64,000 bases of DNA, taken from positions 248,001-312,000 of the forward strand of contig CP075492.1 of assembly GCA_021613535.1 (NCBI GenBank), given 5' to 3'. The position numbers and the translations under genes are program-made. Under the pieces are notes generated by a model, which saw only the letters and a program-made list of their open reading frames with translations, did not search any database and was not told where the DNA came from. Positions 1,021-64,000 of the stretch are shown one piece after another (within the stretch, counting starts at the first letter, position 1; each line of letters begins with the position of its first letter). The stretch comes from Adineta vaga (Eukaryota; Animalia; Rotifera).

Positions 1021-4000
1021 CTTCACTTGTGATATTTGATTGTCGATCAAATATAACATCATCGATTTCCTTAGCTTCCTTCGCCAATATAAGATCAAGT
1101 TTCGATACAGCTGTCCCACACATGTTCACTTCATCCACTATTCCATTCGATACAAACAATTGTTCAATACAATATGAAAATCGTCCACCTATATCTGTAA
1201 CAGTTCCATCATCAAATAAATCATGAGAACATATCAAATGCAATGATAATCGATTATTTTCTAATGTTGGATCATAAATAAATGTTAGCATAAAATCAAA
1301 TTTAGCTGCTTCATTCGATTGCTCTAACATTACTGGCTCTAATTTTGTATCATTCATCGATAAGTAACTCTCACTTTCAGATAATGTGATAAAATTAAAC
1401 ATTATTTCCAAAAAGTTAAGATTCGATTGGTTGGCATGAAAGTCATTAAGAATATGTTGAAGTGGATAATGAGAATGTTTAAGTATTGATAAACACATTT
1501 CTCTTACAGAATGAACAACTTCATCAAATGACCAATCTCCATTGAGTTGAATACGATATGGTAATGTTGCTACAAACATTCCTATCATATTATACAATTC
1601 AGATCGATATCGATTGGCATTTATACTACCAACACATAAATCAGTTTGATTGTGAGATAATTTAAATAGAAATACATAAAATATCGATAGTCCAAGTTGA
1701 AAAAATGTAAGATGATGTGATGATGCATAGTTTAGAAATGATGTACATGTAACATCATTTAGTATTATTTGAGTTGTAGCACCTAAGCCAGATCGATGAT
1801 GAATTGATGAACGAGATCGATCATATGGTAATGATAATGAATGTTGAAGATCACATCCTTGAAGTTGAGAATACCAAAACTCACGAGATAAGGTCATATC
1901 CATGACATGTTCATGAACAGAATAATCAACATATTGAAATGAATTGTCATCTAGAGATAGCGAACTATGATCTTGATAAGCAAGAGAAAGATCACGAATA
2001 AAGATTGATGTTGATGCACCATCAAAGAAAGCATGATGAACAGTAAATAATATTAAATCATCTCTATTCAACATATCATCTTCTTCATTTGAACTGTGTG
2101 TGTGAGAACGAAGAATATGACAATTAATGACATGTCCTTTTGATAAATCAAATAAATCACATTTATTCAAGATTCTCTTCACAATTTCATTCATATCGCC
2201 ATCTTCTCTGGAAACATTCACTATTGAAAAACCAAATGTTTCACTATTATTGCTTAAAGTATTCATATCTCGACAATCTTGTACAATAATACCATTTTGA
2301 TCAAGATAAAGTGCTGTTCTCAGAATCTGATGTTTTCTAATGATACATTGATATGCATGATATAATCGTGAAATTGATATATGATGGTCATTTATCGATG
2401 ATAGACGATATATTAATGGAATAACATACATATTTGTATTGTTATCTGTCGAAGAAGAAGAAGAAGAAGAAGAAGAAAATCGAATATTTTCATCTAAGAA
2501 AATGCGTTCTTGAGCAAAGGATGCTTTCGCTAAAGTGAGAAATAGAATGTGGTTATTAGAGTATTTTTGAGATTATATTTGTTACCTGTAAGGATATTTA
2601 ATGAATGCCAAGAATGATCATCTTTACTCAATTCGGTATTGAGAATCTGATGAATAAGTTTTGCATGATCAATGATAGTTGGATGTTGAAATAGATCAGT
2701 AATAGCAATGGAATTTATTTCTAATCGAAATTCTACTTTATAGTGATGTAGAAGTTGCATAATAATTAATGAATGGCCACCAATAGAGAATATGTTTGTA
2801 TTAGTAGAGATTTGTTTTTGTTTCAATAGATCACACCATATATGATGAATAATAGATTCAATTTTATTTGTTGGTTCTACTAAATCGTTAGTATTGTTGA
2901 GTTTAGTTGAAGAGAGAACAAGGGAATCAGGTGAGGGCAATCGTTTTCGATCAATTTTTCCATTTGGATTGAGAGGTAATTTATCAAGAATAATGAAATA
3001 AGATGGAATCATATGCGGTGGAAGATGTGATTGACAATATTCATGTAATTCTTTTTCACTAACGACTGAACTTTGAACATAAGCAACTAAATGATCTTCA
3101 CCCCATTTCACCACAACACAAGTAGATATCGATGTAATACTAAGTAGGCATCGTTCAATTTCACCAAGTTCAATTCTTTGTCCATGTAGTTTGACTTGGA
3201 AATCTTTCCTTCCTTGATAGTTTAAGTTACCGTTAAAATCCATTTTAACCATATCACCTGTACGATAATTAATATCGCCATCGATTTCGATAAGTGCTTG
3301 TGCTGTCAGATCATCACGGCCAAGATAACTGGCAAAGATCCCAATTCCTCCAACAAACAGTTCTCCTTCTTGGTTGATCACCACTCTTTGTAAATGTATA
3401 TCCAAAAGTAAATGACGATAGTTTGGTAGTGGTCGTCCAATTGAAATATTTTCGGTTTCTATCATTTGATTCAATAGATGAATAGTAGAGACAACTGTCG
3501 TTTCGGTTGGACCATATATATTCCATATGTTACACTTCACTATTCCAATATTTACAATCAGATGTTTTAATTTGTCAGGGAATGGTTCTCCTTAAAAAAA
3601 TATGAAATTTGATCGTAGAATATATTTGACGAAAAAACTTAACGGCACACTGTCGTATGCTTGTAAGATTCTGATACAAATATATGAAAAGCAAATAGGA
3701 CGAAAGAAGACTACGGTTATATTCTCGCACTAAATGATCATTGAATTCGCTGCCAACTGACTCCGAATCATTAAATGTGACAATACAACTGTAGGAATGA
3801 CTGTATACGAATTATATTACGTTGTCTACACACACTTGATTATCAACTTACCAACACTACAAAGTGATCGAAGATATTTGACAGCATGATGCATGTTAGA
3901 TTGGTTAATAAAAGTGAAGAAATGAAAAAGCAAACTTGGAACAGTGTGTATATATGTAATTTGTTTGTCGTATAACACTTTTGATAGATAATCAAAATCA

Positions 4001-6330
4001 AAAGTTTCTTGTGGATGAAGCATAACTAATGTAACGCCTTTTGATAACAAACCAAGTATTTCGTGAATATGTATGTCGAATGAATATCGTGACATTTGAA
4101 TAACGGTGTCACTTTCGGCCAATATTTTGGCTCCAATAAAAGAATGCATATGTTCAGAGAAATTTCGATGTCGGATTCGAACCTACAAAAAAAGATAAGT
4201 GCGAAACAGATTTCAGAACATATATATACGAACTGCTTTCGGCATTCCAGTTGAGCCACTTGTGAAAATGATGTATGCGATACAATCCGGTGTTATAATC
4301 ACATTCGATAACCGATTTTCAATAATTCTATACATAATCACGTCGATAAACAGTATCAGATTAATATGGCATGTGATAATAACATCATTGAACTTGGACT
4401 TAGTTGATGACTCAACGAGCACAATTCGACTTTCAATTTGTTCGAAAAGAGAATGTAGCCGATGAGGTGGATCTCGTGGAGATAATGGACAATATACACC
4501 ACCTACCATCTCAATTGCCATTATACCAATTACCTAAAACACGAGAAACTTCCTGATTATAAACATCACAAAATTATCCAACGCAACCTACCATTGATAT
4601 ACTTCTCTCAACACATTGACAAATAATATCACCAACATTTACACGATATTCATTCAATAGAGTCAAAGACAATACTTGAACATAATATAACAGTTCACAA
4701 TATGTCAACGACTGTTCATCTAATTCTACAGCTAACTTTTGTGAATAGATCATCGCTTTAGAAACAAACTCATGATGAATGCATTTGACAGATGGATATG
4801 ATATTTGTGTATTATTCATTGATTGTACAAGTAATTGTTCAGTTGGTAGTGTTAATGATAATTCATACAGTGGTTTCTTCGATTGACTATCAATAATAGA
4901 TGCACATAGATCATACAACAGTGAATGAAATTGTTGTGAAATCTTATTCACAGTTTCCACGTGAAACAAATCCAATGATGCATCGATTGTACATGAAAGT
5001 TCATTAGGATCCAAAGTATGATGAAAAGTGAGAATAAAATCAAATTTACTCATCACTTCATCTTCACTAATCTCAATCGAATATGGTGCTAAAATAAGTT
5101 CATTATCACCAAGATTTACTTTGTCTTGATCGTCATTTGTCATCGATGTTATAAACTGGAATGATGTATCAAGAAATGCAGGATTTGATAGATGAGGATG
5201 TTGTGCAAGAATACGTTGAAGTGGAAAATATGAATATTTCATAGTATTTGTCATCAAGACTCGCATTTGTTGAGTGAATTGATGAAACGAAGAATGAGGA
5301 TCAAGTTGACATCGAAGAGGAATAGCATTGACAAACATTCCAATTAGAGATCTAAATTCATCTCGATAACGTCCATCTGTATTTATTCCAATACAAAGAT
5401 CTTGTTCTCCATTAGTTAATTTGAATAAAAGAATAAAATAAATTGTGAGTGCCAAATACTCAAGTGAAATGTTATTTGTCGATGCATATGTAAGAAAGTA
5501 ATGTGAAAGATCTTGTCCAAAATCAAACGAAATAGATGTTCCACGACCAGTTCGATGTTCATTTGCAAGACGATATCGATCATATGGTAATGAAAGAGAT
5601 TGATCAAGTTTACAGTCATGGAGAGTATCAAGCCAAAACATTTCTGCACCAGTCATTGACATTCCTCGTTCGATAGCAGCATCTACATAGAAGAACAACG
5701 ATGAATGACATATGAGAAAGAAAAAGTGCGATGTTGAAGATGTATACTTACAATCAAGATATCGAATATTCATTTCATCATCATTGTTGTTGTTATTGCT
5801 AAGTAATTCACCTGTTGTATATACTTGATTAAGATCATGAAGAAAGATATGCATTGATGGAAAATCAAATGCTGCATGATGAAAATTGAAGATGATTATA
5901 TCTTTATGATGAAGTAGATGATCGGAAGAGATGTGTTTGTAATAGACAAGATGACATCGAAAGACAAGACCTTGAGTAAGATTGAAGAGTTGAGGATTTC
6001 GTTTTTCTTCATGTATGATATTGTTGAGTTGTTGTTGTGTTTCATAAGTACTCTCAATAAATGTAAATAATGTCTTTTGATCTGTGGTAATGTCTATGAT
6101 TCGTTGCATCAATATATTTTTATCTTTGTCGAAAATGAATGCTGTATGAAGTGCAAGATGTTTGCTGATAGTGAGATCGAGTGCATGTTGAAGTTGTTTG
6201 ACTGATATAGTATTGTTTGTAGAAAGGTGATAAACGAAAGGCATGTTGTAGATTGCTACTTGTGGATTTTGAGGATCGAATCTCATTTGTTCGTCGAGCC
6301 AAATGCGAGCTTGTGCATATGATGCTGGTG
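1021..6330 (-). CDS. NRPS module M7 (C-A-T(alpha)-C(alpha))
   Basis: Exons 5752-6330, 4592-5682, 4234-4533, 3852-4182, 2586-3590, 1021-2529 (4815 nt = 1605 aa). Code DIHHCVIVVK. Followed by a donor at 1020 and an intron that copies 15673-16690, implying a further module beyond the window. Confidence 0.9.
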
Positions 6331-9300
6331 CTATAGTAATTGCAGTTTATGTGTGTAACAATAAAAGTGTCAACGATATACAGGACAGGATGTATTAGCG
6401 TCTATGATGATTCGCTCTATATTGACCTTGAGATTAAGATGGTCCTTCTAGTCTGATTAGCTTAGAACATCTGCCCGGGTAGCAAAAGATGTGGGTTCGA
6501 ATCCTACGTATGCTATCTTTTCTTTATTTTCTTCTATATCAGGTTTCTGTCACTTATGTCTCTTCCCTAGCTATAATATGAAGCCAATACGATGAAACAG
6601 ACTTTTTGCTGATAACTTTATTCATAGTCTGTGCCTCTCTCAAAATACAGGCTGTATTCTCGCTTGTTTAATCTAACTATTGTCTTCTAATGTGAGTTTT
6701 CGAAAAAGAGTTAAACAGTATAATTGATTTCAAATTAAGGATAGTGTAAAGCGGGTAACACGTTGGTCTCTGAGTTAACGAGAAATTTGATTTTTTGGCA
6801 AGTTCAAAAAATCAGCTGTAATACTTAGGGCAATCCAAAAGTAGTGAGGGAGGTACTCGTTTCCTTAACCAGGGATATAAAAAGAATTTCTTTTTCCACT
6901 AATGGATAGAGCGTGGTTTGCTCTATCTATCCATGCTATGTGATCACTATTAAACTGCGACTATGATAACAAAATTTTGATAGGATCTCTTTCTGTCGCA
7001 TATTCACTGGTAGCACGAACAAGAATGCTTGTGAGTATTTTTGGAATAACTTCTGATAGAAACAGGATAGACAACTGCCGTTTTCACCGTTGGAAAGAGG
7101 AGATGAGGACGCATCGAGCTATGTATCACTAATTTTTCCAATCTACTTTTTATAAGGTTTCAGCTGGCTTTTTAAAGAGGAAATCTATTCCATAAGTTGT
7201 TTACAGTAAGTTTTCAATAATCGTGTTCATATTCAAACTACTAATTGGATATCTACAGGCTGCGAAACACTCAGCTATTTAATACAATTATTTATGAATA
7301 CTATCTATTCTTAAGAAACCTCTACTACGATATTCTATCAAATTTTTCGCCTTTTCTTCTTTTTTATAAAACAAGATTTTTTTCGCCGGTTAGAAAATTG
7401 AATAAAAAATGTCGGAACTCATAATAGAAAACTCGATAGTATACTGTTCAATGCGTTTTCGTCTCCTTTTTCCAACGGTGAAAACTGCAGTTGTCTATCC
7501 TGTTTCTATCAGAAGTTATTCCAAAAATACTCACAAGCATTCTTGTTCGTGCTACCAGTGAATATGCGACAGAAAGAGATCCTATCAAAATTTTGTTATC
7601 ATAGTTGCAGTTTAATAGTGATCACATAGCATGGAAAGATAGAGCAAACCACGCTCTATCTATTAGTGGAAAAAGAAATTCTTTTTATACCCCTGATTAA
7701 GGAAACAAGTACCTCCCTCACTACTTTTAGATTGCCCTAAGTATGTTATCTGTAAAACTGATCAAAAGCCGCCATGGTTGAGTGGTTACGTGTTCGACAC
7801 GTAGCTACTAGGTACTGTGTTCAAACTTCAGTAACGTCAGGCATGGAATGAAGCTGGACAAGTCACTAACGGCTAAGTTGTCTGAAAATGACTCAATCCA
7901 CATGAGTCATTCGTACTGACTACACACTTAGTCAGTATGTTGGACGGCAGAGGGTCCAGATACCACCGTCCGTAAAAAGAAAAAGACGAAAGAAACCGGC
8001 TGCATGTGGATAAAAATACTAATAATAGCCGCGGCCGGCCGGCAGCGGGCGTTAAGCCTATGCGACGTTATTATTATATTATTATTATTCTTATAAAACT
8101 GATCAAACGATCTTTTAGGATTAGTACTAAACTCAATGAAAATGATGACTTGTTTGTTATTTCGAAAAATTTCATCGATAGTCCAGACACCGAGGTATAT
8201 ATGTATGAGAGGTATAACGGTCTTTGCAATCTGATAGTTGGAAGCGGTTTTATGCAGTCTAAGCCGTTTAGAGCGATCTAAGTGTTCTATGTGGTCTTGT
8301 GGTTTAGAGCGGTATAATCAAGGGGGAGGGGGGGGGGGAGAAGCAAGACTTCATATACTTCAAACAGAATTTGAAATCTCATGAAGTACCGTGAATTACT
8401 GTGAAGTATGAGTGAAGTATGAGTGAAGTATTAATGAAGTATTAGTGAAGTACTAGTGAAATAGAGTGAAGTATGATTGAAGTAGATTGAAGTACCAATG
8501 AAGTCTCGCTTTTCCTCCCTTAGCTATAATGCGATCTAGGCAGCACAACAATCTTAGAGATCATAGATTGCATTGGTTAGGGGGCATAGATCACTTTACT
8601 GCTTAGATCGTATAGATAGCAGCAGAGCGTTATAGCATGAATAGTGCTGTAAATAACGTAGCTAATATAAATGGTATTTATATATATATATATTTCATTT
8701 TGTTACAAAATTATCACGGACATCAAATTGATATACTCTGTTTTTTTGGTGAATAAAAATCATTGGTCATTGTTATGTAGTCGATAGCTTTATTACGGTA
8801 GGACACGTTTTAACAGTTTTTTTAATCATAGAAGCATTGCTTTATTAACATCAATGAGACATCCGTGTCACAAAGGTTGTCTGCAGTTGAAATGATCCTT
8901 TTCGTTCTGCATATGCTAGTGCCTTACATAGTTTTTATCTGTCGATGATGGCAAAATAATAAAAGACCACCACACTATCGAAAATTTAACAAAATCCCTC
9001 TTGCGATGAGATACATCACACACAACCTTCCTATAACCGTAAATTCTAGCTGATGGAACGTACATACTTTCCAAAGCTTGATATTAGTAATGGATGTTTA
9101 TACACACTGTATACATATGCCTAAAACTCACGTCTATATTTCCACTAGTAGTACACTTAGATTATAGTCATATCTTTAAGAACTCATTTATTGCTTCAAA
9201 AAATTGAGCAGTCAGACAGCAGAAAAACAGAGGAATTGCCGTATTCGTAAGTCATCTTGACAGAATTGAGAACACTATGTTTTTCAAAAATTACCGAGAT

Positions 9301-12300
9301 GTCAAATATTTTACGGAGTTATTCTGTAGAGCTATCAGAAAAATACGAATCTAAGTCTGTATGAAATTGTTATTGCTGTTTCTTGTAATCATTCATTGAT
9401 TTATTCATAACACAAGAACGTGATAAAGGCGTATGCGATTATGAAAAGTCATAATCATCTTATTTCTCTTTTTCACAATGAATGTTTCATTTTTCACTCA
9501 TGTTGAAACTCTACTTATGATAAGTTCTTCATGCTTCTTATGCCAGAGGGTAAAAGAAGTGAATGTAGTATGGGCACAAATGGAGTAACAGACGATAGAC
9601 TCTGTAGAAAAGTAAAACTAGATTAATTTTCTTTTTTCGAAAATTCTCAAATGAATGAATCAATCGAACGTTAACCATTACAGTTTCAACAGCGAAAAGT
9701 AAACTCAAATGCAGATCCATATTATACGAAAGTCCTGAGAAATATGTCGTATGCAAATACTCCCCAAATCGATGAAGTTTTTTTGCAACATTTGATCTTA
9801 ATAAAGAACCTTGAAGAGTGCGTATTCTCTTACAGAATCTTCTTCTTTATCTCACCCAACTTAAGACTGTGAGGGTGAGGATGGTCTTTAGCATAAATGC
9901 AATCTAAAGAAGCTCAGATTTTAGCAGATTTCAGCAACTGTTTCTTTTGATATTTCAATGCTTTAGGAAGTTTTGTAGCATCTACGAAGCCTTTTGAAAG
10001 CTTCCGTAGAACCTCGACTATTATAGAATGTATAGTCACATATTATATGACATCATGAAGAGCTGTTTCTCAGTAAAATATGTATCTTTAAGGAGGGAAA
10101 ACAAGAAAATTGGAAAACATACCTTCAAACATTATATGTGGTTGTCGACAAAATATAACATCATCAATTTCGCTAGCTTCACTCGGTAAAATAAGACTAA
10201 GTCGTGATCGAGATATGAGACATGTATCCATTTCATTCATTGTTTCAGTAGATGAAAACAATTGTTCAATACAGTATGAAAATCGTTCAGCTATACTTGC
10301 AATAGTTTTCTTATCAAATAAATCATGAGAACCAACTAAACTAAATGATAATTTACCATTTTCAAATGTTGGATCATAAATGAATGTTAGCATAAAATCA
10401 AATTTAGCTGCTTCATTCGATTGCTCTAACATTACTGGCTCTAATTTTGTATCATTCATCAGTAGGTAAGTGACACTTTCAGACAAAGTGATAAAATCGA
10501 ACATTGTTTCCAAAAAGCTAAGATTAGATTGATTGAGATGAAAGACACTGAGAATATGTTGAAGTGGATAATGAGAATGTTCAAGAATTGATAAACACCT
10601 TTCTTTTACATAATGAACAAGTTCATCAAATGACCAATTTGCATTGAGGTGAATACGATATGGTAATGTTGCTACAAACATTCCTATTACATTATGTAAT
10701 TCAGCTCGATATCGATTAGCATTGAGACAAGAAATACATAGATCATCGTCACGAGTTAATCTGGATAGAAATAGATGGAATATGGACAATCCAAGTTGAA
10801 AAAGTGTAACATGCTGTGATGATGCATAATTGACAATCGATGTGCTTATTTGATCGTTAAGTGTGATATGAATTGTAGAAGCTAAGCCAGATCTCTCGTG
10901 ATTGGATGAACGAGATCGATCATATGGTAACAATAATGGACGTTCGAAATTATATGTTTCTAACTGTGAAAACCAAAATTCTTGTGATGGTTTCATGTCA
11001 ATTTGACGTTCATGGATAGTGTAATCAATATATTGTAATGCTTCTTCGTCATCTTTCTCTGACCATTCTGAAGCGTTATTATAAGCAAAACAGAAATCTT
11101 TGAAAAAAATTGGTCCACATGATCGATCATATGCTGCATGATGAAGAGCAATTACTAGAACATGGGAACTTGTTATCAATTGATTATCATTATTTTTGTT
11201 AATTGAGTTCTGATGTTGAAGTATTTGACAATGAAAAACACGACCTATTGATAAATCAAATAAATTAGGATCAAAAGTTAGTTGAGTAATTATATTTTGA
11301 AGTTCATTGTTATCTTTGAACGTTCGATTTGCAACTATCGTGAATGTGTTATTGGTATCTGTAATATATTGTTCTAAGATGCCATTATCGGTGTTAAATT
11401 TGATAGATGTATGTAGTATTTTATGTTTGTTCAAGATATATTGAAGAGTTTTCAATAAACGCGTGAATGACAATGATCCTTGAGTAATTCTTAGCACCAT
11501 TAGTTCATTATAAATAGCAATATTTTTTGAAAAACGAACTTGTTCATCAAGAGAGATGCGTTCTTGGACAAAAGAAGCAATACCTAGGAATTGAACGAAA
11601 GAATGTATGAATTCATCCAATAATTTTCTAATAGATATATTCACCTCGATTGATATGCAATGAATGCCAAACTGTTGCTTGCATATCATTGTTTGTAACT
11701 GTTTGAAGTAGTTGTGAATGTTGAAATATAGTTGGCTGTTGAATAAATGAGCCTAACAAGAGTGTGTGAGTATCAAAATTGAACAATGATTGATAGCGAT
11801 GATAAAGTTCAATGAATAAAAGAGAATGACCACCAATGGTAAAAAAGTTTGTAGTCCTGGAAATATGATGTCCTTTATAATCAAGAACTTGTCGCCAAAC
11901 ATTACATATACGAGACTCTAATTCATTGAGTGGTGCTTCGAAGTGATTATCTGTTGATACAGTTGCCGAAGAGAAGTTAGGTGAAGGTAAATGTTTTCGA
12001 TCAATTTTTCCATTTGGATTGAGAGGTAATTTATCAAGAATAATGAAATGAGATGGAATCATATGCGGTGGAAGATGTGATTGACAATATTCATGTAATT
12101 CTTTTTCACTAACGACTGAACTTTGAACATAAGCAACTAAATGATGTTGACCCCATTTCATGACAACACAAGTAGATATCGATGTAATACTAAGTAGGCA
12201 TCGTTCAATTTCACCAAGTTCAATTCTTTGTCCATGTAGTTTGATTTGAAAATCTTTTCTTCCTTGATATTGAACAAGATTATTCTGATCTATCTTGACA

Positions 12301-15300
12301 AGATCACCAGTTCGATAAAACAACATATCATCGATATAAATCACTGCTTTTGATGTTAAATCATTGCGTCCAAGATAACCAGCAAAGACGCCTACTCCTC
12401 CAACAAGTAGCTCTCCTTCTTGGTTTATCAATACACTTTGCAAATATTCATCCAGAATTATATGGCTGTAGTTTGGAAATGGTCTGCCGATAGGTACATT
12501 CTCGCTAGCCGTGCCTTGATGGATACGATGAACAGTAGAACCAACGGTGACTTCGGTTGGACCATACAAGTTCCACAATTCGATAGTGTGTTGAGCAATG
12601 CTCACTAGCAAGTGCATCAGCGTCAAAGTAAAAGGCTCGCCTAAATAAATACACAGCGATTTAGATAGCAATTGATATCTGTGGGAATTCACCTACCAGC
12701 ACAGCCAATATATCGTAGATGCTTTACAGAATTCTGTGCGCTCATTTCTTGTAAATAAGAGAAAAAACTTCGAAGCCAACTTGGAACAGTCGCAACAAAA
12801 CTTATTTCCTTTTCTTTCATCACATTGGCAAGATATGGAAAGTGCAGAATTCCACCTGGGTGTAACATTACTAAACCGCTTCCGGTTGTGAAAGCAGCGA
12901 ATATATCCTCCAGGTGAGCATCGAAAGAGCAACGGGCCATTTGCAATGTTATATCGCTTTTCTTCTTCATACCATTTCTCATCAATGAACAAATAAAATG
13001 AGCAATATTTCGATGCCGAATTTGAACCTAAAAGAAAGCAAAACAGATATTTACATCTCTTCCAGATCGAAACACTATGCATAACCAACCGCCTTTGGTA
13101 TTCCAGTTGAGCCACTTGTGCAAATAATGTATGCAATGTTATCTGGCGTAACTACGACGTTTGACAATTGATCAAAGTCTATGTTATTTTGAATGTCATT
13201 ATTACTCAATATTGAATCAACATTAACAACAATATTTCCATCATGTATCTTCTCTATTGTCAGCCAATGCGCAAGAATAAGATGACTTTGAGTTTGCTCG
13301 ACAAGTTTATATAAACGATCTTTTGGATCTCGTGGAGATAATGGACAATATACACCACCTACCATCTCAATTGCCATTATACCAATTACCTAAAATGAAC
13401 AAAGATCTCTCATTAAACATCAAGAGGCACTCTTCTCATTCATCAACTTACCATTGATATACTTCTCTCCACACATTGACAAATAATATCACCAACATTT
13501 ACACGATATTCATTCAATAGAGTCAAAGACAATACTTGAACATAATATAACAGTTCACAATATGTCAACGACTGTTCATCTAGTTCCACAGCTAACTTTT
13601 GTGAATAGATCATCGCTTTAGAAACAAACTCATGATGAATGCATTTGACAGATGGATATGATATTTGTGTATTATTCATTGATTGTACAAGTAATTGTTC
13701 AGTTGGTAGTGTTAATGATAATTCATACAGTGGTTTCTTCGATTGACTATCAATAATAGATGCACATAGATCATACAACAGTGAATGAAATTGTTGTGAA
13801 ATCTTATTCACAGTTTCCACGTGAAACAAATCCAATGATGCATCGATTGTACATGAAAGTTCATTAGGATCCAAAGTATGATGAAAAGTGAGAATAAAAT
13901 CAAATTTACTCATCACTTCATCTTCACTAATCTCAATCGAATATGGTGCTAAAATAAGTTCATTATCACCAAGATTTACTTTGTCTTGATCGTCATTTGT
14001 CATCGATGTTATAAACTGGAATGATGTATCAAGAAATGCAGGATTTGATAGATGAGGATGTTGTGCAAGAATACGTTGAAGTGGAAAATATGAATATTTC
14101 ATAGTATTTGTCATCAAGACTCGCATTTGTTGAGTGAATTGATGAAACGAAGAATGAGGATCAAGTTGACATCGAAGAGGAATAGCATTGACAAACATTC
14201 CAATTAGAGATCTAAATTCATCTCGATAACGTCCATCTGTATTTATTCCAATACAAAGATCTTGTTCTCCATTAGTTAATTTGAATAAAAGAATAAAATA
14301 AATTGTGAGTGCCAAATACTCAAGTGAAATGTTATTTGTCGATGCATATGTAAGAAAGTAATGTGAAAGATCTTGTCCAAAATCAAACGAAATAGATGTT
14401 CCACGACCAGTTCGATGTTCATTTGCAAGACGATATCGATCATATGGTAATGAAAGAGATTGATCAAGTTTACAGTCATGGAGAGTATCAAGCCAAAACA
14501 TTTCTGCACCAGTCATTGACATTCCTCGTTCGATAGCAGCATCTACATAGAAGAACAACGATGAATGACATATGAGAAAGAAAAAGTGCGATGTTGAAGA
14601 TGTATACTTACAATCAAGATATCGAATATTCATTTCATCATCATTGTTGTTGTTATTGCTAAGTAATTCACCTGTTGTATATACTTGATTAAGATCATGA
14701 AGAAAGATATGCATTGATGGAAAATCAAATGCTGCATGATGAAAATTGAAGATGATTATATCTTTATGATGAAGTAGATGATCGGAAGAGATGTGTTTGT
14801 AATAGACAAGATGACATCGAAAGACAAGACCTTGAGTAAGATTGAAGAGTTGAGGATTTCGTTTTTCTTCATGTATGATATTGTTGAGTTGTTGTTGTGT
14901 TTCATAAGTACTCTCAATAAATGTAAATAATGTCTTTTGATCTGTGGTAATGTCTATGATTCGTTGCATCAATATATTTTTATCTTTGTCGAAAATGAAT
15001 GCTGTATGAAGTGCAAGATGTTTGCTGATAGTGAGATCGAGTGCATGTTGAAGTTGTTTGACTGATATAGTATTGTTTGTAGAAAGGTGATAAATGAAAG
15101 GCATGTTATAGATTGCTATTTGTGGATGATCAGGATCGAATCGTATTTGTTCGTCAAGCCAAATGCGAGCTTGTGCATATGATGCTGGTGCTAGAATAAT
15201 TGTGGTTTGTTTTGTGCATGTAACAATAAAAGCACGAATGATGTGAAGGATATGATAGAACATTCTCTCTACTTGTCATGGTATTCTGCCATGAGTCGTA

Positions 15301-51300: not shown

Positions 51301-54300
51301 TGGAATCATATGCGGTGGAAGATGTGATTGACAATATTCATGTAATTCTTTTTCACTAACGACTGAACTTTGAACATAAGCAACTAAATGATGTTGACCC
51401 CATTTCATGACAACACAAGTAGATATCGATGTAATACTAAGTAGGCATCGTTCAATTTCACCAAGTTCAATTCTTTGTCCATGTAGTTTGATTTGAAAAT
51501 CTTTTCTTCCTTGATATTGAACAAGATTATTCTGATCTATCTTGACAAGATCACCAGTTCGATAAAACAACATATCATCGATATAAATCACTGCTTTTGA
51601 TGTTAAATCATTGCGTCCAAGATAACCAGCAAAGACGCCTACTCCTCCAACAAGTAGCTCTCCTTCTTGGTTTATCAATACACTTTGCAAATATTCATCC
51701 AGAACTATATGGCTGTAGTTTGGAAGTGGTCGTCCTATCGGAAGATTTTCCATTTCTGTTGTAGCATTCAACAGATAACACGTACAATCAATAGTCGCCT
51801 CTGCTGGCCCATATAAATTCCAAATGTTACATTCTAATATTTCAATGTTTACAATCAAATTTATTAATTTGGGATTAAATGGTTCTCCTGTTAAAATATA
51901 AAAGAAATATGTTTAAGATCTAAGTAAAAACATATAAATGCTGAGTAGATTATGGCTTCGTAAAATAGGTAAATACTCAGAAGAAAAATTAGATGCTCAG
52001 TGAAAATAATAGTTGTCGGTAACTAAAATTTGTTGCTAAGTTAAATAATTAACATCTAAGCAAAATATCTAATTACTCAGTTAAGAAATAAGAATGATAA
52101 GTTAAAAAAGAAACTTGATGGATAGAGAAAAGGTATTGCTGAGTAAAAGTGACTATGTCAAGATAAAGATTGTCAACCTTGATGTGGATCATATGTTTTC
52201 TTTTTCTTCCTGTGACAGTTACATATGATCTTCGCTATTTACCAAAAACTTCTTCTTTAATCGCTTTTGTATATATGCATATGTGTCAGGCAAAGTTAAA
52301 CTTTATATTTGAAAATAGTATTTGTGAGTTTTTACAATAAATTCAAATTCAAGAATTAAAGTCGTCATCGCGGTGCGTTGTTTAAATTTTAAATAATAGT
52401 AATTGCACTAACGTAAGTTTCAGGAAGGTGTAGCGTTCGTTAGTAGTTTTCAATACAAACTATACGAAGTTTCAGGAAGATGTAGAGTCCGCGAGTAGTT
52501 TGCAATAGAAAATCAAATAAAACTTGAGAATATTTAATCATAGTCAGAAGTTACAAATACACGATGGTCTGAAAGTCATGTTACTCGAAAAAAATTGAAT
52601 ATCTCCCTTACTGTTCGATCAAACGGACTAATTTCTTTTATAAAGTATAGAGACATGTTTACATTTCAAATCCATATGGATAACATTAGTGAGAACCTTT
52701 GTTATATATCAGTACTGACCTCAACAAGAAAATTTTTACTTATTAACAAATAGGAAAACAAAACAATATACTTAACATAGGTTCTCACTAATATGGTTGG
52801 TATGGATTTTAATTATCAACATGTCTCTGTGTTTGATGAAAATATTACGTCGTTAACTGGAGCTTAAGGAAGATATTCAATTTTCTCTTTTGATAAAGTG
52901 AATTTTATAACATCCTGTACATTTTTCTTTATTTGTGAAAAAGTAAAATTTTTCTGTTAAAGTCAACTGTAAAACTTAACAAAGGTTCTCACTTATTTTG
53001 TCCACATGGATGGCGAGTGTGAAGTTGTCTTCATATCAGTTAAAAAACCGAGTCTGTGTGGTCGAGCAGTAAGGGAAATATTTAATTTTTTTGGGTAACA
53101 GGACTTTTGGGTCACTTAATATTTGTTATGAGCGTGATGTCAACTGCCCGATCGGAAAGCAAAAAAAAGGGGATGTATCGTTTTCATAGGAAACGATCAT
53201 ATATATTCAATTTTGGTGTGAAAATATTATGTTCATAGCGCTAGTAACGATTGTTGCAAGCTTCTTTTGAGAAAAGTTGTAGCTAGTTAGAAAATTTTTT
53301 TCATATTAATCTACTCGAACAGCCCGTGTGGGTTCGATAGCGTATAGTTCTTACTCATGTAGTTTTTAGGTTTATCTGATGCAGAAATAGTTGCTGAACA
53401 GTCTACTCTATGCTCAAATTATTACCATCGCTACCTTAAAGTTTAGTATGCTGCCAAAACACTAATAGAGTCTGTGTATCTATTTTGTCAGTCTGTGTTG
53501 ATTTTCAACGAAACATCGTTTTAAATCGTATGATAGAACGGTATTCATTCACAGAAGAAAAGATGATTCAATTTTGCGCCTAATTAGAAACGAATTTTGA
53601 CTAAGTTTGATTTTACCTAAAACTCAATTCTGCCTGGGACATCTGTGTATGTATATATAGTAGTTGAAGTTTAGTTTAAACATACTACAATACCAAATTT
53701 TTTACAAACACAACAGTATGAGGCTTCATCTGAATCCGACGATGCGATGGACCAGCAGAATGTCCGAGACGAGAGAATAGTTAAACGTAAATTTGCTTGA
53801 ATAAGACAAAAGTGCTTTTCTAATGGTACACACGCTCAATTAGAAATCAAACGAGAAGAACAATTGAGTCGATATTGTACTAACAGAGTTAAAGATAGAC
53901 TGAGAGTTTATTACCGGTACAATAAAGTTAAGTTTCACGGCCTGCAATGTAATGCCTCAATTTATCTCTTTCATACGCATAATCATGATGAGGTTATATT
54001 ATATAGTGTATATAATGGGCATAGTCATACTGATCTAAGTAGACGTTATTCTTCTCTGAAGAAATGAAACAGAATATCCAGGAACTGTTCGATATGAAAT
54101 TAAAGCCAAAAAAAATATATGAAGTAACGGGAAGGTGAGAAATAACAAGATAACCCGTAGTCAGTTAAACAATTATTTAACACAATTACGTAGACAAAAA
54201 TTTTGTCCTTCTATCTTAAATTTAGCAGAATTAGAATCTTGATGTCAAGAGAAACATATAATACCACAATCTGAAGATGAACCATTTGCAGTTTCTTTTC

Positions 54301-57300
54301 ATAGTCATTACGAAGATGATGAAGACGTCAATGATGGTAATAAGTTTAAATTTTTTCTCTCTTCAAAATGATTACTGCAATTTGCTTTAATATCAACCAA
54401 CTTATATGCTCACGCCATGTAGAAATTAAACTGGAACGGTTTTCCAGCGTTAACTGTTGGAACGAGTGATTGCGATCGTAAGTTCCATTCATTTGGCTTA
54501 ACTGTATGTACTGATGAAAAAGAACCAGACTTCTCCTTTATTTTTAAAAGTATTATCGACGGCGTAAAACGAACAACTGGATTAGCCTTTACAGTTGAAG
54601 TACTTAGAGCTGATGGTTCTGGTACTATACGCAACGCTTAGCAAATGCTTTTTTAAGAAGGATAAAATGGTCATGTGTTAGTCTCATATGCGGCGCAGCA
54701 CTGAAAAAAAATGAAGAGCTGGAAAATCGATTCGAAGAAAAGAAAAGAAATATTAGATGATATTGACACATAACAATTATGTGAATCAGAAACTGTGTTT
54801 CGTAATGCATCATCTTTATTTTTGAAGCAATGGAGAAAATCGAAAAAAGAGTTTACAGAATATTTTGAAAACGCATAGTTAACAGTTTTTGATTTATGTC
54901 ATGAATGATATAATGGTGCGTTCACACCAAACACTAACAATCAATTAGAAGCTATGAACAAAATCATCAAAGACGAATATACTTTTAGAGAACGACATAC
55001 ATTATCGAGATTTCTTACACGTGCAAGTGATATTGTCAATAAATGGTTTATGTCCTAGGAGCAAAATCGAACAGACATATTTGTGTTTTCTACAGAACTA
55101 ACAATCCCAGTTGCACAATGGACCGATGCATATCATTTTGAAAATCCTCCAAGTTTGTTTTACAACTACAATCACAAAGACAAAGGGTTTTACTGATTAT
55201 TATATACCAGCAGGTGATGCAGCCAATATCACAAAAAAATGATATCCAAAGATATAAGAACAAACCGTAGACTACATTTGTACAATTTAAGTATCGTCAG
55301 TTTGAAATTTGGAAATTAACTATACTAGACATTGTATCGAAATGGAAAAATGAGTTTTGTAATTGTCGAAATTTTTTGTAAGAATACATATGTAAAAACG
55401 TGTTTGGCATGTCAATTAGATTGAAACACTGTAAACCACCTTCAATAGCGAAGAATGTACTTATGGGTTAGAAAAGAAAGCGAGAACCACCACGATAAGC
55501 AATACAACCTTTGTTAATCGATTAACTGTTCAAACTAAAGTTTTTACTTAAACATATTTGTTTTTCTACTTAACAAAAGTTATATATATGTATATACTTA
55601 TCAATGCTAAATATTTTGTTTAGCAAACATAACTCCGTCTACTGACATGAGAATTTAAATAAACCACTTAGCAAAAAATCTTTTCTTACTTAGATCGATA
55701 TTAAACCAATTACTTAGAAAACATTGAATATATTACTAGAAATTATATTTTTTACTTTACCATCCTGATATATGTCAATATAGAATCGGATCGGATAAAA
55801 TGTAGGAATTGACAGATGCAACTGCACGGTTTGTGATACATCTGTAAATTTCTGATACACAAATGCAGATTGTCAGTATATGGTACTAACATTATACAAT
55901 CGTATTGTCGAAGTACCCGACCTCTTAATCCCTTATCGATTAACTTACAATAGTCTAAAGCGACAGAAGGGATATAGTAACAGTCGTCTATGAACTATAC
56001 CACTCCAGCTAAGTTAAGGATGGATCGTTTCAGTAAATTGAAAAGTGCTAACTCGCACACTTGTGCACTGAAACTATAGATTCCTATCAACTCAAATACT
56101 AATATTTTGATCAACTTACCACTGCTACAAAGTGATCGAATATATCTTACAATATGATCCGCGTTACGTTCGCTGATGAAAGTGAAGAAATGAAAAAGCA
56201 AACTTGGAACAGTGTGCATATATGTTATTTGTTTGTTGGATAATACTTTCGATAGATAATCAAAATCAATAGTTCCTTGTGGATGAAGCATAACTAACGA
56301 AGCACCCTTTGATAAAATACCAAGTATCTCTTGAACATGAATATCGAATGAACATCGTGCCATTTGTATTGCAGTGTCATATTCGTTGAATGAATTTATG
56401 AAAGTCAAAGAATGCATACATTCATCGAAATTTCTATGACGAATTTGGGCCTATAAAGGAAAAGAGAAAGATTAATTCAACAACAAGAAACAGGCAATAA
56501 GCAATAACGAACCGCTTTCGGTACTCCAGTTGAGCCACTTGTAAAAATGATGTAAGCAATATTTTTTGGTGTTACTACAATGTTTGACAATTGATCACAG
56601 CCAATATTATTTTGATTGTCATTATTAGTTAATATTAAATCAACATTCACTACGATTGTTTCATTATGTATCATAGTCTTTGTTAACCAATGAGCAATAA
56701 CAAGATGACTTTGAGTCTGCTCGACAAGTGTATGCAGACGATATGAAGGGTCTCGAGGTGATAATGGACAATATACACCACCTACCATTTCTATTGCCAT
56801 TATACCAATTACCTAGAATGAACAACAATTTCTCCTAAATTCTAAGAGACACTCTTCTCATTCATCAACTTACCATTGATATACTTCTCTCCACACATTG
56901 ACAAATAATATCACCAACATTTACACGATATTCATTCAATAGAGTCAAAGACAATACTTGAACATAATACAACAGTTCACAATATGTCAACGACTGTTCA
57001 TCTAGTTCCACAGCTAACTTTTGTGAATAGATCATCGCTTTAGAAACAAACTCATGATGAATGCATTTGACAGATGGATATGATATTTGTGTATTATTCA
57101 TTGATTGTACAAGTAATTGTTCAGTTGGTAGTGTTAATGATAATTCATACAGTGGTTTCTTCGATTGACTATCAATAATAGATGCACATAGATCATACAA
57201 CAGTGAATGAAATTGTTGTGAAATCTTGTTCATAGTTTCCACGTGAAACAAATCCAATGATGCATCGATTGTACATGAAAGTTCATTAGGATCCAAAGTA

Positions 57301-60300
57301 TGATGAAAAGTGAGAATAAAATCAAATTTACTCATCACTTCATCTTCACTAATCTCAATCGAATATGGTGCTAAAATAAGTTCACTATCACCAAGATTTA
57401 CTTTGTCTTGATCGTCATTTGTCATCGATGTTATAAACTCGAATGATGTATCAAGAAATGCAGGACTTGATAGATGAGGATGTTGTGCAAGAATACGTTG
57501 AAGTGGAAAATATGAATATTTCATACTATTTGTCATCAAGACTCGCATTTGTTGAGTGAATTGATGAAACGAAGAATGAGGATCAAATTGACATCGAAGA
57601 GGAATAGCATTGACAAACATTCCAATTAGAGATCTAAGTTCATCTCGATAACGTCCATCTGTATTCATTCCAATGCATAGATCTTGTTCTCCATTGGTTA
57701 ATTTGAATAAGAAGATGAAATAAGTCATGAGTGACAAATATTCAAGTGACATGTTATTTGTCGATGCATATGTAAGAAAGTATTGTGAAAGATCTTGTCC
57801 AAAATCAAACGAAATAGATGTTCCACGACCAGTTCGATGTTCATTTGCAAGACGATATCGATCATATGGTAATGAAAGAGATTGATCAAGTTTACAGTCA
57901 TGGAGAGTATCAAGCCAAAACATTTCTGCACCAGTCATTGACATTCCTCGTTCGATAGCAGCATCTACATAGAAGAACAACGATGAATGACATATGAGAA
58001 AGAAAAAGTGCGATGTTGAAGATGTATACTTACAATCAAGATATCGAATATTCATTTCATCATCATTGTTGTTGTTATTGCTAAGTAATTCACCTGTTGT
58101 ATATACTTGATTAAGATCATGAAGAAAGATATGCATTGATGGAAAATCAAATGCTGCATGATGAAAATTGAAGATGATTATATCTTTATGATGAAGTAGA
58201 TGATCGGAAGAGATGTGTTTGTAATAGACAAGATGACATCGAAAGACAAGACCTTGAGTAAGATTGAAGAGTTGAGGATTTCGTTTTTCTTCATGTATGA
58301 TATTGTTGAGTTGTTGTTGTGTTTCATAAGTACTCTCAATAAATGTAAATAATGTCTTTTGATCTGTGGTAATGTCTATGATTCGTTGCATCAATATATT
58401 TTTATCTTTGTCGAAAATGAATGCTGTATGAAGTGCAAGATGTTTGCTGATAGTGAGATCGAGTGCATGTTGAAGTTGTTTGACTGATATAGTATTGTTT
58501 GTAGAAAGGTGATAAACGAAAGGCATGTTGTAGATTGCTACTTGTGGGTTTTGAGGATCGAATCTCAATTGTTCGTCGAGCCAAATGCGAGCTTGTGCAT
58601 ATGATGCTGGTGCTATAGCAATTGTATTCTATTCGTGTAGGGATAGAAACACCAATGATGTAGAGGTGCTGAGGACGCACTCTCCCGAGTGATAGTTTCA
58701 TGGGGTGTCTCTCTCTCTTTTACAAGTACGTTCAGTATTCATGCGAGTGGTAGCTAAGTACTCTCTTCAAAGATGAGCTATGGATAAAAAATAAAAATAT
58801 ATGAGTGGCCTAAATCACTCCACAGTTATATCAGAAGTGCCTGTAAAGTATTTTTAAATACTTGAAATATTTAATACGATTATCCTTTAGAACTGTAATT
58901 GAAGTACAGAGTGAATTCGACGTTAAGTAGCGATCCAGTAAGTTTCAGCTTTTATATAGGAAATACTTCACCATGTCTCTTTCGATATATATGTTTACAC
59001 TAATCCCTTCGTTTTCTTTAACAAAGAAAGTAAATGAACTACATATACTATAGGTAAAAGCAGAAGCAAACAAAATATATTCTCTATCAGAAACTAAAAC
59101 GAACTAAATTTTGTCTTTCGAACACTCACAAATGAATCAAACAAATGTCAACTATGTATCTTTCATAGCTGCGATGGCTAAGTGCTTATGTTGTTTAAGA
59201 TAAATTGAAACTATATTCTGTGCAAACGTCAGTGGCATCATTCATAGAATAAATTTCAAGAAATCGGGAACGAAATACTTCTCATAATTCTTACACTAGG
59301 GTATGGCCTACAATGTTAGTCACGATTTTAGAGAGGAGGAGTCCAAATGTCACTGTCTATAAGAGGAGAAAAGCTGCAGAGACCAGATTGATATGTAAAT
59401 CATAACAATTATAGTTGGCATCTACACAAGACACGTCTATGAAAGATTATTCGTAATATGGATCATCAACAACAATAAAATTTTAATCACAACAAGACAG
59501 AAACCTACCTTCACTTGTGATATTTGATTGTCGATCAAATATAACATCATCGATTTCCTTAGCTTCCTTCGGCAATATAAGATCAAGTTTCGATACAGCT
59601 GTCCCACACATGTTCACTTCATCCACTATTCCATTCGATACAAACAATTGTTCAATACAATACGAAAATCGTTCACCTATATCTGTAACAGTTCCATCAT
59701 CAAATAAATCATGAGAACATATCAAATACAATGATAATCTATTGTTTTGTAATGTTGGATTATAAACAAATGTTAACATGAAATCAAATTTAGCTATTTC
59801 ATCTGATTGTTCTAATGATACTTCTTCTAATTTTGTATCATTCATCGATAAGGAACTCTCACTTTCAGATAAAGTGATAAAATCGAACATTGTTTCCAAA
59901 AATGTAAGATTCGATTGGTTGGCATGAAAGTCATTAAGAATATGTTGAAGTGGATAATGAGAATGTTTAAGTATTGATAAACACATTTCTCTTACAGAAT
60001 GAACAACTTCATCAAATGACCAATCTCCATTGAGTTGAATACGATATGGTAATGTTGCTACAAACATTCCTATCATATTATACAATTCAGATCGATATCG
60101 ATTGGCATTTATACTACCAACACATAAATCAGTTTGATTGTGAGATAATTTAAATAGAAATACATAAAATATCGATAGTCCAAGTTGAAAAAATGTAAGA
60201 TGATGTGATGATGCATAGTTTAGAAATGATGTACATGTAACATCATTTAGTATTATTTGAGTTGTAGCACCTAAGCCAGATCGATGATGAATTGATGAAC

Positions 60301-63300
60301 GAGATCGATCATATGGTAATGATAATGAATGTTGAAGATCACATCCTTGAAGTTGAGAATACCAAAACTCACGAGATAAGGACATATCCATGACATGTTC
60401 ATGAACAGAATAATCAACATATTGAAATGAATTGTCATCTAGAGATAGCGAACTATGATCTTGATAAGCAAGAGAAAGATCACGAATAAAGATTGATGTT
60501 GATGCACCATCAAAGAAAGCATGATGAACAGTAAATAATATTAAATCATCTCTATTCAACATATCATCTTCTTCATTTGAACTGTGTGTGTGAGAACGAA
60601 GAATATGACAATTAATGACATGTCCTTTTGATAAATCAAATAAATCACATTTATTCAAGATTCTCTTCACAATTTCATTCATATCGCCATCTTCTCTGGA
60701 AACATTCACTATTGAAAAACCAAATGTTTCACTATTATTGCTTAAAGTATTCATATCTCGACAATCTTGTACAATAATACCATTTTGATCAAGATAAAGT
60801 GCTGTTCTCAGAATCTGATGTTTTCTAATGATACATTGATATGCATGATATAATCGTGAAATTGATATATGATGGTCATTTATCGATGATAGACGATATA
60901 TTAATGGAATAACATACATATTTGTATTGTTATCTGTCGAAGAAGAAGAAGAAGAAGAAAATCGAATATTTTCATCTAAGAAAATGCGTTCTTGAGCAAA
61001 GGATGCTTTCGCTAAAGTGAGAAATAGAATGTGGTTATTAGAGTATTTTTGAGATTATATTTTGTTACCTGTAAGGATATTTAATGAATGCCAAGAATGA
61101 TCATCTTTACTCAATTCGGTATTGAGAATCTGATGAATAAGTTTTGCATGATCAATGATAGTTGGATGTTGAAATAGATCAGTAATAGCAATGGAATTTA
61201 TTTCTAATCGAAATTCTACTTTATAGTGATGTAGAAGTTGCATAATAATTAATGAATGGCCACCAATAGAGAATATGTTTGTATTAGTAGAGATTTGTTT
61301 TTGTTTCAATAGATCACACCATATATGATGAATAATAGATTCAATTTTATTTGTTGGTTCTACTAAATCGTTAGTATTGTTGAGTTTAGTTGAAGAGAGA
61401 ACAAGGGAATCAGGTGAGGGCAATCGTTTTCGATCAATTTTTCCATTTGGATTGAGAGGTAATTTATCAAGAATAATGAAATAAGATGGAATCATATGCG
61501 GTGGAAGATGTGATTGACAATATTCATGTAATTCTTTTTCACTAACGACTGAACTTTGAACATAAGCAACTAAATGATCTTCACCCCATTTCACCACAAC
61601 ACAAGTAGATATCGATGTAATACTAAGTAGGCATCGTTCAATTTCACCAAGTTCAATTCTTTGCCCATGTAGTTTGATTTGAAAATCTTTTCTTCCTTGA
61701 TAATAGATACGACCATTATGGTTTGTTTTGGCAAGATCACCAGTTCGATAAAATCGTGCATTATCTATGTAAATCAGTGTGCTCTTTGTCAAATCATCAC
61801 GGCCAAGATAGCCAGCAAAGATGCCAACTCCTCCGATTAGTAGCTCTCCTTGTTGGTTTATCAAAACAGTTTGCAAATACTGATCCAACACTAGATGTCG
61901 ATAGTTTGGAAGTGGCCGTCCTATCGGAATATTTTCCGTTTCTTTGGTCGCGTTCAACAGATAATAAGTACAATCAATAGTCGCCTCTGCTGGACCATAT
62001 AAATTCCATAGTTGACAAGTGTCTGGTAACTTATTGACGATTAGATTGACCAGTTTCGATGAACAAGTTTCACCTAGAATAGAAGTTTATTCCTATTGTT
62101 TCTGATAAGTTTCGGATAAGTTTTACTAACCACCAGTAGTAACTGAGCGCAGATACTTCAAATTCTTGAAATCGCTCTGTGTACTCAGAAAAGTAAAGAA
62201 ACTGTGAAGCAAACTTGGAACAGTCGTAATCGAAGTAATTTGTTTGTCTTGAATAATATTGAGCAGATAGTCAAACTGAAGAATTCCTCTGGGACGTAAC
62301 ATAACTAACGCACCTCCACTAGTCAGAGCACCCATTATATCTTGCAAATGATCATCAAAAGAGCAGCGTGACATCTGAAGAATTCTATCGTCTCTATTTA
62401 TAATGTTTGTGAAACTTAATGAGTCTATCATATGAGTAATATTTCGATGACGAATTTTGATCTACAAATAAGTAGAAAAATCGCTGTTAGACTTTTCCGA
62501 TTACAATATATTGTTTCACAAACCGCTTTCGGTACTCCAGTTGAGCCACTTGTAAAAATGATGTAAGCAATATTTTTTGGTGTTACTACAATGTTTGACA
62601 ATTGATCACAGCCAATATTATTTTGATTGTCATTATTAGTTAATATTAAATCAACATTCACTACGATTGTTTCATTATGTATCATAGTCTTTGTTAACCA
62701 ATGAGCAATAACAAGATGACTTTGAGTCTGCTCGACAAGTGTATGCAGACGATATGAAGGGTCTCGAGGTGATAATGGACAATATACACCACCTACCATT
62801 TCTATTGCCATTATACCAATTACCTAGAATGAACAACAATTTCTCCTAAATTCTAAGAGACACTCTTCTCATTCATCAACTTACCATTGATATACTTCTC
62901 TCCACACATTGACAAATAATATCACCAACATTTACACGATATTCATTCAATAGAGTCAAAGACAATACTTGAACATAATATAACAGTTCACAATATGTCA
63001 ACGACTGTTCATCTAGTTCCACAGCTAACTTTTGTGAATAGATCATCGCTTTAGAAACAAACTCATGATGAATACATTGGACAGATGGAAATGATATTTG
63101 TGTATTATTCATTGATTGTACAAGTAATTGTTCAGTTGGTAGTGTTAATGATAATTCATACAGTGGTTTCTTCGATTGACTATCAATAATAGATGCACAT
63201 AGATCATACAACAGTGAATGAAATTGTTGTGAAATCTTATTCACAGTTTCCACGTGAAACAAATCCAATGATGCATCGATTGTACATGAAAGTTCATTAG

Positions 63301-63975: not shown

Positions 63976-64000
63976 CTATATAGAAGAACAAGTGACAAAT

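Follow-up and report, generated by a model that had tools for sequence, protein, structure and literature searches.

Divergent adenylation cores between near-identical flanks in the modules of a hybrid peptide synthetase locus of the rotifer Adineta vaga

How can the modules of one non-ribosomal peptide synthetase (NRPS) share almost the same DNA over much of their length and nevertheless carry different substrate pockets? The question is raised by a 64,000-nucleotide stretch of the Adineta vaga genome (G000:C3:248001-312000, hereafter the window), from an assembly of 100.8 Mb in six contigs. The DNA is AT-rich (~33% GC), its long open frames all lie on the minus strand with short GT-AG introns between them, and Pfam detects a sevenfold repeat of Condensation, AMP-binding, AMP-binding_C and PP-binding domains across it (modules M1 to M7). 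The window and the fetched remainder together form a locus of 11 modules. We find that the pocket-bearing part of each adenylation (A) domain consists of old segments and not of fast-evolving protein, and that the flanking scaffolds have probably been kept alike by recombination.

The gene model rests on continuous reading frames, GT-AG sites and what is conserved across the seven copies; Pfam, PDB and public protein searches were run exon by exon, and joined spliced proteins entered local scripts only. Each module has five exons, named here C-alpha, A exon 1, A exon 2, A exon 3 and C-beta after the condensation (C) and A domains that they encode. The C-alpha exon (579 codons) includes the start of the A domain with the A1 motif, A exon 1 spans the A2 to A3 motifs, A exon 2 has 110 codons, and A exon 3 covers A5 to A10 plus the thiolation (T), or carrier, domain. 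Every A domain is cut by three GT-AG introns at identical positions in all seven modules: J1 (phase 0, after ERSISM), J2 (phase 0, after PKA of the A3 motif) and J3 (phase 1, within the Gly codon of G-E, separating pocket positions 301 and 302). Two further phase 1 introns separate T from C-beta (J4) and C-beta from the next C-alpha (J5). Since these five positions and phases are common to all modules, they point to one intron-bearing ancestral module inside the rotifer lineage. After splicing, all seven modules are open, with no stop in ~11,100 codons.

The domain assignments are regular throughout. Each A exon 3 matches PF00501 and PF13193, and the spliced models show the motifs SGSTGxPKA, FDxx, NxYGPxE, YRTGD, GRKDFQxKLHGQRIELGEIE and NGKIDRK; in M4 the A5 motif is NLCGPAE, with Cys in place of the usual Tyr, and the same core is reused in the gene's last module. 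Carrier domain PF00550 and the phosphopantetheine-serine motif GGHSL are found in seven of seven modules, PF00668 in 14 exons, and HHxxxD in all 13 condensation exons that are complete within the window. Each carrier domain is followed by two tandem condensation-type domains, C-beta and then C-alpha, with HHxxxD kept in both; the predicted C-A-T-C order is an unusual module layout. The possibility that C-beta is an epimerisation domain was considered and rejected, its top PDB and NCBIfam matches being ordinary condensation domains. Likewise, the top PDB matches of C-alpha (M7) are canonical C domains and not epimerisation domains.

The specificity codes were read from sequence landmarks. FDxxxx gives positions 235, 236 and 239, the residue two before VPS (x-T-V-P-S) gives 278, the third and first residues before G-E give 299 and 301, NxYGPxE together with the third and fourth residues past its Glu gives 322, 330 and 331, and NGK gives 517. 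For positions 299 and 301 the landmark is the sole basis, since four additional residues stand between 302 and 321 in the rotifer domains. The reading agrees with structure in M7, where residues 13-256 of A exon 3 match residues 311-556 of 1AMU and place I, V and V at 322, 330 and 331, and where ysFDihihE and tyihtVPSll align with FDvsvwE and vhfVPSml of bacterial A domains. The codes are DDQTTGLIDK (M1), DIQHCSLIDK (M2), DVQQDGLVDK (M3), DIQYCGLLQK (M4), DIQHCILIGK (M5), DAEAGALVGK (M6) and DIHHCVIVVK (M7). They are identical, in seven cases out of seven, to those given in the original prediction, which had proposed seven different codes on a near-clonal scaffold. As it had also stated, Asp235 and Lys517 are kept in every code, which would be compatible with alpha-amino acid substrates. 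The bacterial Ser and Gln codes to which it had likened M2 and M3 agree with published ones (PMC10634486, PMC8313283), the match extending to 7 of 10 positions for M2 and 6 of 10 for M3. In a literature search on six of the seven codes (all but DIHHCVIVVK of M7), no paper containing any of them was found, and the beginnings DIQH, DVQQ, DAEA, DDQT, DIHH and DIQY were all missing (0/6) from the supplementary file of a paper reporting 508 bacterial signatures. Given this absence, substrate predictions trained on bacteria are likely to be weak for the rotifer codes.

The distribution of divergence along the modules was then determined from a codon alignment of all seven, using mean pairwise nucleotide identity in a sliding window and Nei-Gojobori synonymous (dS) and non-synonymous (dN) divergence by region. 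Over codon columns 1-570 (C-alpha, A1-A2) the mean identity is 0.90-1.00, mostly at least 0.96. It starts to drop at about column 586, right behind the A2 motif (YCPLSPRDP), reaches a trough of 0.52-0.66 over columns 676-840, and is back at 0.97-0.99 over columns 916-990 (A8-A10, with A8 read as YQGRKDFQ). The dS values follow the same course, at 0-0.17 in C-alpha, 0.25-1.75 in the variable zone (dN/dS 0.25-0.40) and 0-0.11 in A8-A10; most values in the zone fall at 0.6-1.75, and C-alpha, A1-A2 and A8-A10 taken together stay at 0-0.19. Variation is therefore concentrated between A2/A3 and A8, as predicted, and both identity and dS are sharply non-uniform with boundaries at these motifs. The near-clonal scaffold of the original prediction holds for C-alpha and A8-A10 across all modules, but not for T and C-beta, which fall into two old, diverged classes: class 1 with M1, M4, M5 and M7, and class 2 with M2, M3 and M6. 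Within a class, dS of T and C-beta is 0-0.04; between classes, T stands at 1.4 and C-beta at 0.6, with a dN of 0.56 for the T domain.

Is the variable zone young and fast, or old? The introns bear on this. Those inside the zone (J2 and J3) are 33-56% alike between modules, which is the random level, in a comparison that left out the J3 introns of M2 and M5 (4.2 and 7.1 kb); the exception is the J2 intron of M2 and M5, which is 100% identical in the two. J1 and J4, which flank the zone, agree at 98-100% within types. Unalignable zone introns, saturated synonymous sites and a dN/dS well below 1 together rule out a recent duplication followed by fast pocket evolution, and positive selection on the pocket was accordingly rejected as an account of the zone. 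Conservation in the nine pocket columns is 0.39, below the zone average of 0.54, a difference short of significance.

The zone is also not a single block. M1, M2 and M5 are identical from the A2 to the A3 motif, and M2 and M5 remain so up to column 760, 29 codons ahead of the end of exon 2. From the other side, M2 equals M6 from column 845 on, just past position 331, and M4 and M7 are 98% alike from column 875, starting before A7. These tracts reach into the core from both sides and end short of the pocket columns (716-824), with the exception of the M2-M5 tract, which spans positions 235-278, where both types read DIQH. Exon borders and unit borders do not coincide.

For comparison with paralogs, the rest of the locus and three paralogous loci were fetched and all their exons mapped. 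Several pocket exons turned out to have their closest relatives outside the gene. The nearest relative of the M1 exon lies at C3:1.637 Mb (65%), cores at C1:3 kb and C3:1.58 Mb match the M2 and M5 exons at 81-90%, and for the M4 exon there are two cores of 80-81% identity, at C3:1.626 and 1.649 Mb, besides a 100% identical one in the last module of its own gene. The neighbouring cores of the same gene are only 45-57% identical to these exons, below their relatives in other loci. Genome-wide, no copy above 63% exists for the pocket exon of M3 and none above 50% for that of M6. A search for recent donors of the cores thus yielded none in the three paralogous loci, nor genome-wide for M3 and M6. 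Of the ~90 pocket exons matched across the genome, about three quarters lie within open frames of ~110-160 codons. This agrees with one exon structure throughout the family, and therefore with a diversification that took place in the rotifer lineage once the introns had been gained.

The trees show that core and scaffold differ in their history. In the tree of the pocket region, modules cluster by type across loci; in the trees of A8-A10 and C-alpha they cluster by locus. An approximately unbiased (AU) test on the pocket alignment rejects a single clade for the gene's 11 modules, which costs 428 log-likelihood units (p 9e-15), and the same test on C-alpha rejects an M4-type clade across two loci (p 4.5e-100). 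Furthermore, the codes are conserved with the types. DIQHCSLIDK is found in M2 and in C1_1334 and P1_1581202, which belong to two other loci; DIQYCGLLQK is shared by M4 and P1_1626441, with a one-letter variant in another paralog; and DIQHCILIG/A occurs in three loci. The shared DIQHCSLIDK and DIQYCGLLQK are identical between loci despite 15-20% divergence of the cores. Between loci, dS is 0.4-1.0 for cores of the same type and 0.2-0.5 for scaffolds, so that the two are of comparable age.

From these data we infer how recombination and selection may have shaped the modules: most likely, the scaffolds have evolved in concert around old pocket islands protected by selection, with breakpoints inside the A core. 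All modules would descend from the single intron-bearing ancestor within the rotifer lineage. Gene conversion or unequal crossing-over among the tandem modules, acting on the DNA with its introns, would repeatedly homogenise C-alpha with A1-A2, A8-A10, and T with C-beta within each of the two classes, and the stretch that builds the pocket, between the A2/A3 and the A5-A8 motifs, would escape. Purifying selection would keep the old, distinct specificity types, which the paralogous loci also hold. Conversion tracts would intrude from both sides and halt before pocket residues change; the only tract that crosses the pocket, that of M2 and M5, would cover positions alike in both ancestral types. 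An opposite order of events, in which modules were recently duplicated with their scaffolds and the pockets were imported later from other NRPS loci by A-core swapping, is unlikely in our view. It would agree with the presence of the M1, M2/M5 and M4 core types in other subtelomeric loci with a different module order, with the M4 core standing twice in the gene at 100% identity, and with multiple breakpoints inside the A core as in bacterial swaps (PMC8097286). However, the best copies outside the locus are only 65-90% identical, the synonymous divergence of the cores (0.4-1.0) is similar to that of scaffolds between loci, and M3 and M6 have no close donor in the genome; any import would then be as old as the split between the loci.

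The remaining explanations are much less probable than concerted evolution around old cores. That young duplicate modules diverged fast in place, under positive diversifying selection on the pocket zone, is very improbable: the contrast with the flanks is sharp and the pocket columns are somewhat less conserved than their surroundings, but synonymous sites of the zone are near saturation at a low dN/dS, its introns are unalignable next to identical flanking introns, and cores of the same type carry the same codes in paralogous loci. We give as little credence to the idea that the near-identity of the scaffolds is an artefact of assembling or polishing a repeat-rich subtelomeric region. Assembly is difficult for repeats of 2-8 kb at 98-100% identity, and a published study remarks that such regions assemble poorly (PMC11258130); against this, a unique core anchors each module, identity varies smoothly and differently for each pair, and the same pattern is seen in other loci of the genome. 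Finally, the original prediction had compared the layout to a constant/variable cassette system. This stands as a description, but we see no sign of a programmed mechanism, and a system that diversifies the product within an individual or lineage, for example by regulated recombination or module-skipping splicing, is extremely improbable. Its appeal is that J3, J4 and J5 are all phase 1, which makes whole modules skippable in frame, and that the scaffolds of this subtelomeric locus are ideal recombination substrates. On the other hand, no near-identical silent donors were found (the best outside copies are at 63% for M3 and 50% for M6 genome-wide, and at 65-90% for the other cores in the paralogous loci), no recombinase or reverse transcriptase was seen by Pfam among ten open reading frames from the gaps, unit borders lie off the exon borders, and ordinary evolutionary recombination fits all data.

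Several points weigh against concerted evolution around selected pockets, or limit how far it can be taken. A permutation test did not find the pocket columns significantly more variable than the zone (p 0.075; p 0.19 for the central zone), so that the argument for selection on specificity comes only from the conservation of codes across loci. The grouping rejected by the AU test on C-alpha was picked after viewing the pocket tree. Homogenisation and an old import of cores are only partly separable, and polishing of a long-read assembly could inflate the identity between repeats. Moreover, different codes need not mean different substrates, and splicing and expression are predictions, with the repeat-laden gaps of 3.8-7.1 kb representing either introns or gene breaks.

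It is also conceivable, if rather doubtful, that near-identical scaffolds and phase 1 borders serve this asexual animal as a standing substrate for recombination or module skipping, by which conserved pocket cores are re-ordered among subtelomeric loci. In that case, new lipopeptides could arise quickly between clones or even between transcripts.

The exons of the seven modules, all on the minus strand, are given here in window positions and in order of transcription. A exons 1 and 2 are placed by the gene model, A exons 3 by Pfam AMP-binding, AMP-binding_C and PP-binding matches, and C-alpha and C-beta exons by Pfam Condensation matches. The M1 C-alpha exon with its A1 motif (62885..64000) is cut by the window end and is assigned from Condensation matches on sister copies and the gene model. 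It is followed by A exon 1 (A2 to A3; 62524..62823), A exon 2 with pocket positions 235-301 (D D Q T T G; 62131..62461), A exon 3 with positions 322-331 (L I D), A5-A10, K517 and a class 1 T domain (61069..62073), and a class 1 C-beta (HHAFFD; 59509..61011; Condensation, 1.1e-47). In M2, the C-alpha exon (56874..58612) and A exon 1 (56513..56812, 100% identical to those of M1 and M5) precede A exon 2 (D I Q H C S; 56120..56450), and a 4,232-nt intron leads to A exon 3 (L I D, K) with a class 2 T domain (50892..51887) and a class 2 C-beta (HHAAYD; 49371..50831). M3 comprises C-alpha (43843..45578), A exon 1 (43485..43784), A exon 2 (D V Q Q D G; 43109..43436), the most isolated core judging from its best other genome copy at 63%, A exon 3 (L V D, K) with T of class 2 (42066..43061) and C-beta of class 2 (HHVAFD; 40545..42005). 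Against public proteins, M3 exon 3 finds only bdelloid and metagenome relatives, at no more than 67%, under a length filter that excludes giant annotated models.

M4 consists of C-alpha (HHEAFD; 33136..34874), A exon 1 (32775..33077), A exon 2 (D I Q Y C G; 32387..32717), A exon 3 (L L Q, K, with NLCGPAE) and class 1 T (31327..32331), and class 1 C-beta (29762..31270). M5 has its C-alpha exon at 27125..28863, A exon 1 at 26764..27063 and A exon 2 (D I Q H C I) at 26371..26701; after an intron of 7,110 nt with foldback repeats come A exon 3 (L I G, K) with class 1 T (18256..19260) and class 1 C-beta (16691..18199). The exons of M6 are C-alpha (13452..15190), A exon 1 (13090..13389), A exon 2 (D A E A G A; 12697..13027; 50% at most elsewhere in the genome), A exon 3 (L V G, K) with class 2 T (11645..12640) and class 2 C-beta (10123..11583). 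M7 closes the window with C-alpha (4592..6330), A exon 1 (4234..4533), A exon 2 (D I H H C V; 3852..4182; backed by the match with bacterial A domains), A exon 3 (I V V, K; 2586..3590; 1AMU ranges as above) with class 1 T, and class 1 C-beta (1021..2529), whose top PDB matches, like those of its C-alpha, are canonical C domains. A coding (TCT)n run (~2440-2470 and sister copies) gives class 1 C-beta domains a variable poly-Ser start, M1 having two Ser fewer than M4, M5 and M7.

The spacing between modules follows the C-beta class: every class 2 C-beta (M2, M3, M6) is followed by a gap of 3.8-5.7 kb, and class 1 C-beta by only 0.9-1.5 kb. The long gaps open with a conserved segment of ~570 nt, 79% alike, at 9190-9760, 39566-40133 and 48438-49008. 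The 3.8-kb gap between M6 and M7 (6331..10122, minus strand), a putative intron with an inverted-repeat element, has a duplicate at 45579-49370; the 5.7-kb gap between M3 and M4 (34875..40544, minus strand) holds a 1.43-kb palindromic multi-copy element (38025-39453). The long gaps contain foldback or palindromic elements at 38025-39453 (arms of 678 nt, 99%), 22278-23528 (242 nt, 100%) and 6821-7744 (318 nt, 93%); of these, the first two were searched against the genome and recur there many times, chiefly towards contig ends. We also considered whether the gaps hide further domains, and rejected this for the ten open reading frames taken from the 3.8-7.1 kb gaps (a set that does not include every small frame), none of which has a Pfam match. 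An 8-kb segmental duplication (4468-12484 and 43719-51731, 98.4% identity) runs from about A6 of one A domain across T, C-beta, the gap and C-alpha as far as the next module's A2 motif. As it starts and ends inside A domains, the duplicated unit is offset from the module.

Outside the window, at C3:332.5-341.3 kb on the minus strand, a full reducing polyketide synthase (PKS) module (KS, AT, DH, ER, KR and ACP by Pfam) stands upstream of the NRPS modules and is followed by a lone C domain, which makes the locus a PKS-NRPS hybrid. The module upstream of M1 (C3:312.6-319.8 kb) is without a detectable C-beta, and a 7-kb stretch free of hits extends from its A-T exon to the C-alpha exon of M1. At the other end, the last exon (C3:235.6-237.9 kb, minus strand) contains the end of an A domain, a carrier domain and Hexapep repeats, and it matches TIGR02353 (Pls/PosA-family NRPS terminal domain) with E 2.5e-31, under the curated cut-off; neither a thioesterase nor a reductase was found in this exon. 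The window is best explained as the middle of one very large spliced, subtelomeric hybrid PKS-NRPS locus, which may be divided among a few neighbouring genes. Its predicted architecture suggests that the enzyme would extend a polyketide-primed chain by some six or seven different amino acids, loaded in order, and the product is probably a lipopeptide. The conserved codes provide a short list of A domains for assay, toward the composition of bdelloid lipopeptides.

The setting agrees with what has been described for bdelloids. Top public protein matches are proteins of Adineta steineri and Rotaria, and the genome holds well over 100 A domains, clustered near contig ends. This is in line with studies of a chromosome-scale A. 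vaga assembly, which report ~40 NRPS/PKS clusters, mostly subtelomeric (PMC11258130, PMC10531068). In the same studies, bdelloid clusters include PKS-NRPS hybrids, and recombination of modules is put forward as one origin of variation (Nowell et al. 2024, PMC11258130; PMC10531068); the locus analysed here belongs to that gene family and host group. As far as the available text of these studies extends, it contains no description of a module-level mosaic, of pocket codes or of their conservation across loci.

The pattern is best read as the Acore mosaic well known from bacterial NRPSs, here in an animal, and not as a programmed cassette system. In bacterial Acore subdomain recombination, exchange affects only the A core, leaves the C-A linker, Asub and the Asub-T interface intact, and has many breakpoints (Baunach et al. 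2021, PMC8097286). The rotifer modules likewise show divergence confined to the core, multiple breakpoints within it and nearly identical neighbouring C domains. They differ from that case (PMC8097286) in being part of an animal nuclear gene with spliceosomal introns, in their arrangement as 11 tandem modules with subtelomeric paralogs, and in that homogenisation of the scaffold is better supported than recent import. A second parallel is the kahalalide NRPS family of the bacterial symbiont Candidatus Endobryopsis kahalalidifaciens, in which the exchanged unit extends from A3 to A6 across 20 pathways (PMC11428043). Here too, a variable specificity unit lies in the A domain between conserved linkers that serve as recombination sites on both sides, and the independent T-to-next-C unit of the kahalalide family compares with the two T and C-beta classes of the rotifer. 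Unlike the kahalalide unit, the rotifer trough spans A2 to A8, its protected island begins at about A3 and ends a little beyond A5, and there are two condensation-type domains per module. The bacterial rule of keeping the C-A linker, the hinge and the carrier interfaces and varying only the pocket core thus operates in a horizontally acquired, intron-bearing animal gene family, whose pocket repertoire, as the shared intron positions imply, diversified inside the rotifer lineage. Its natural breakpoints, chief among them those directly behind the A2 motif, at A3, immediately past position 331 and ahead of A8, are field-tested exchange boundaries for engineering.

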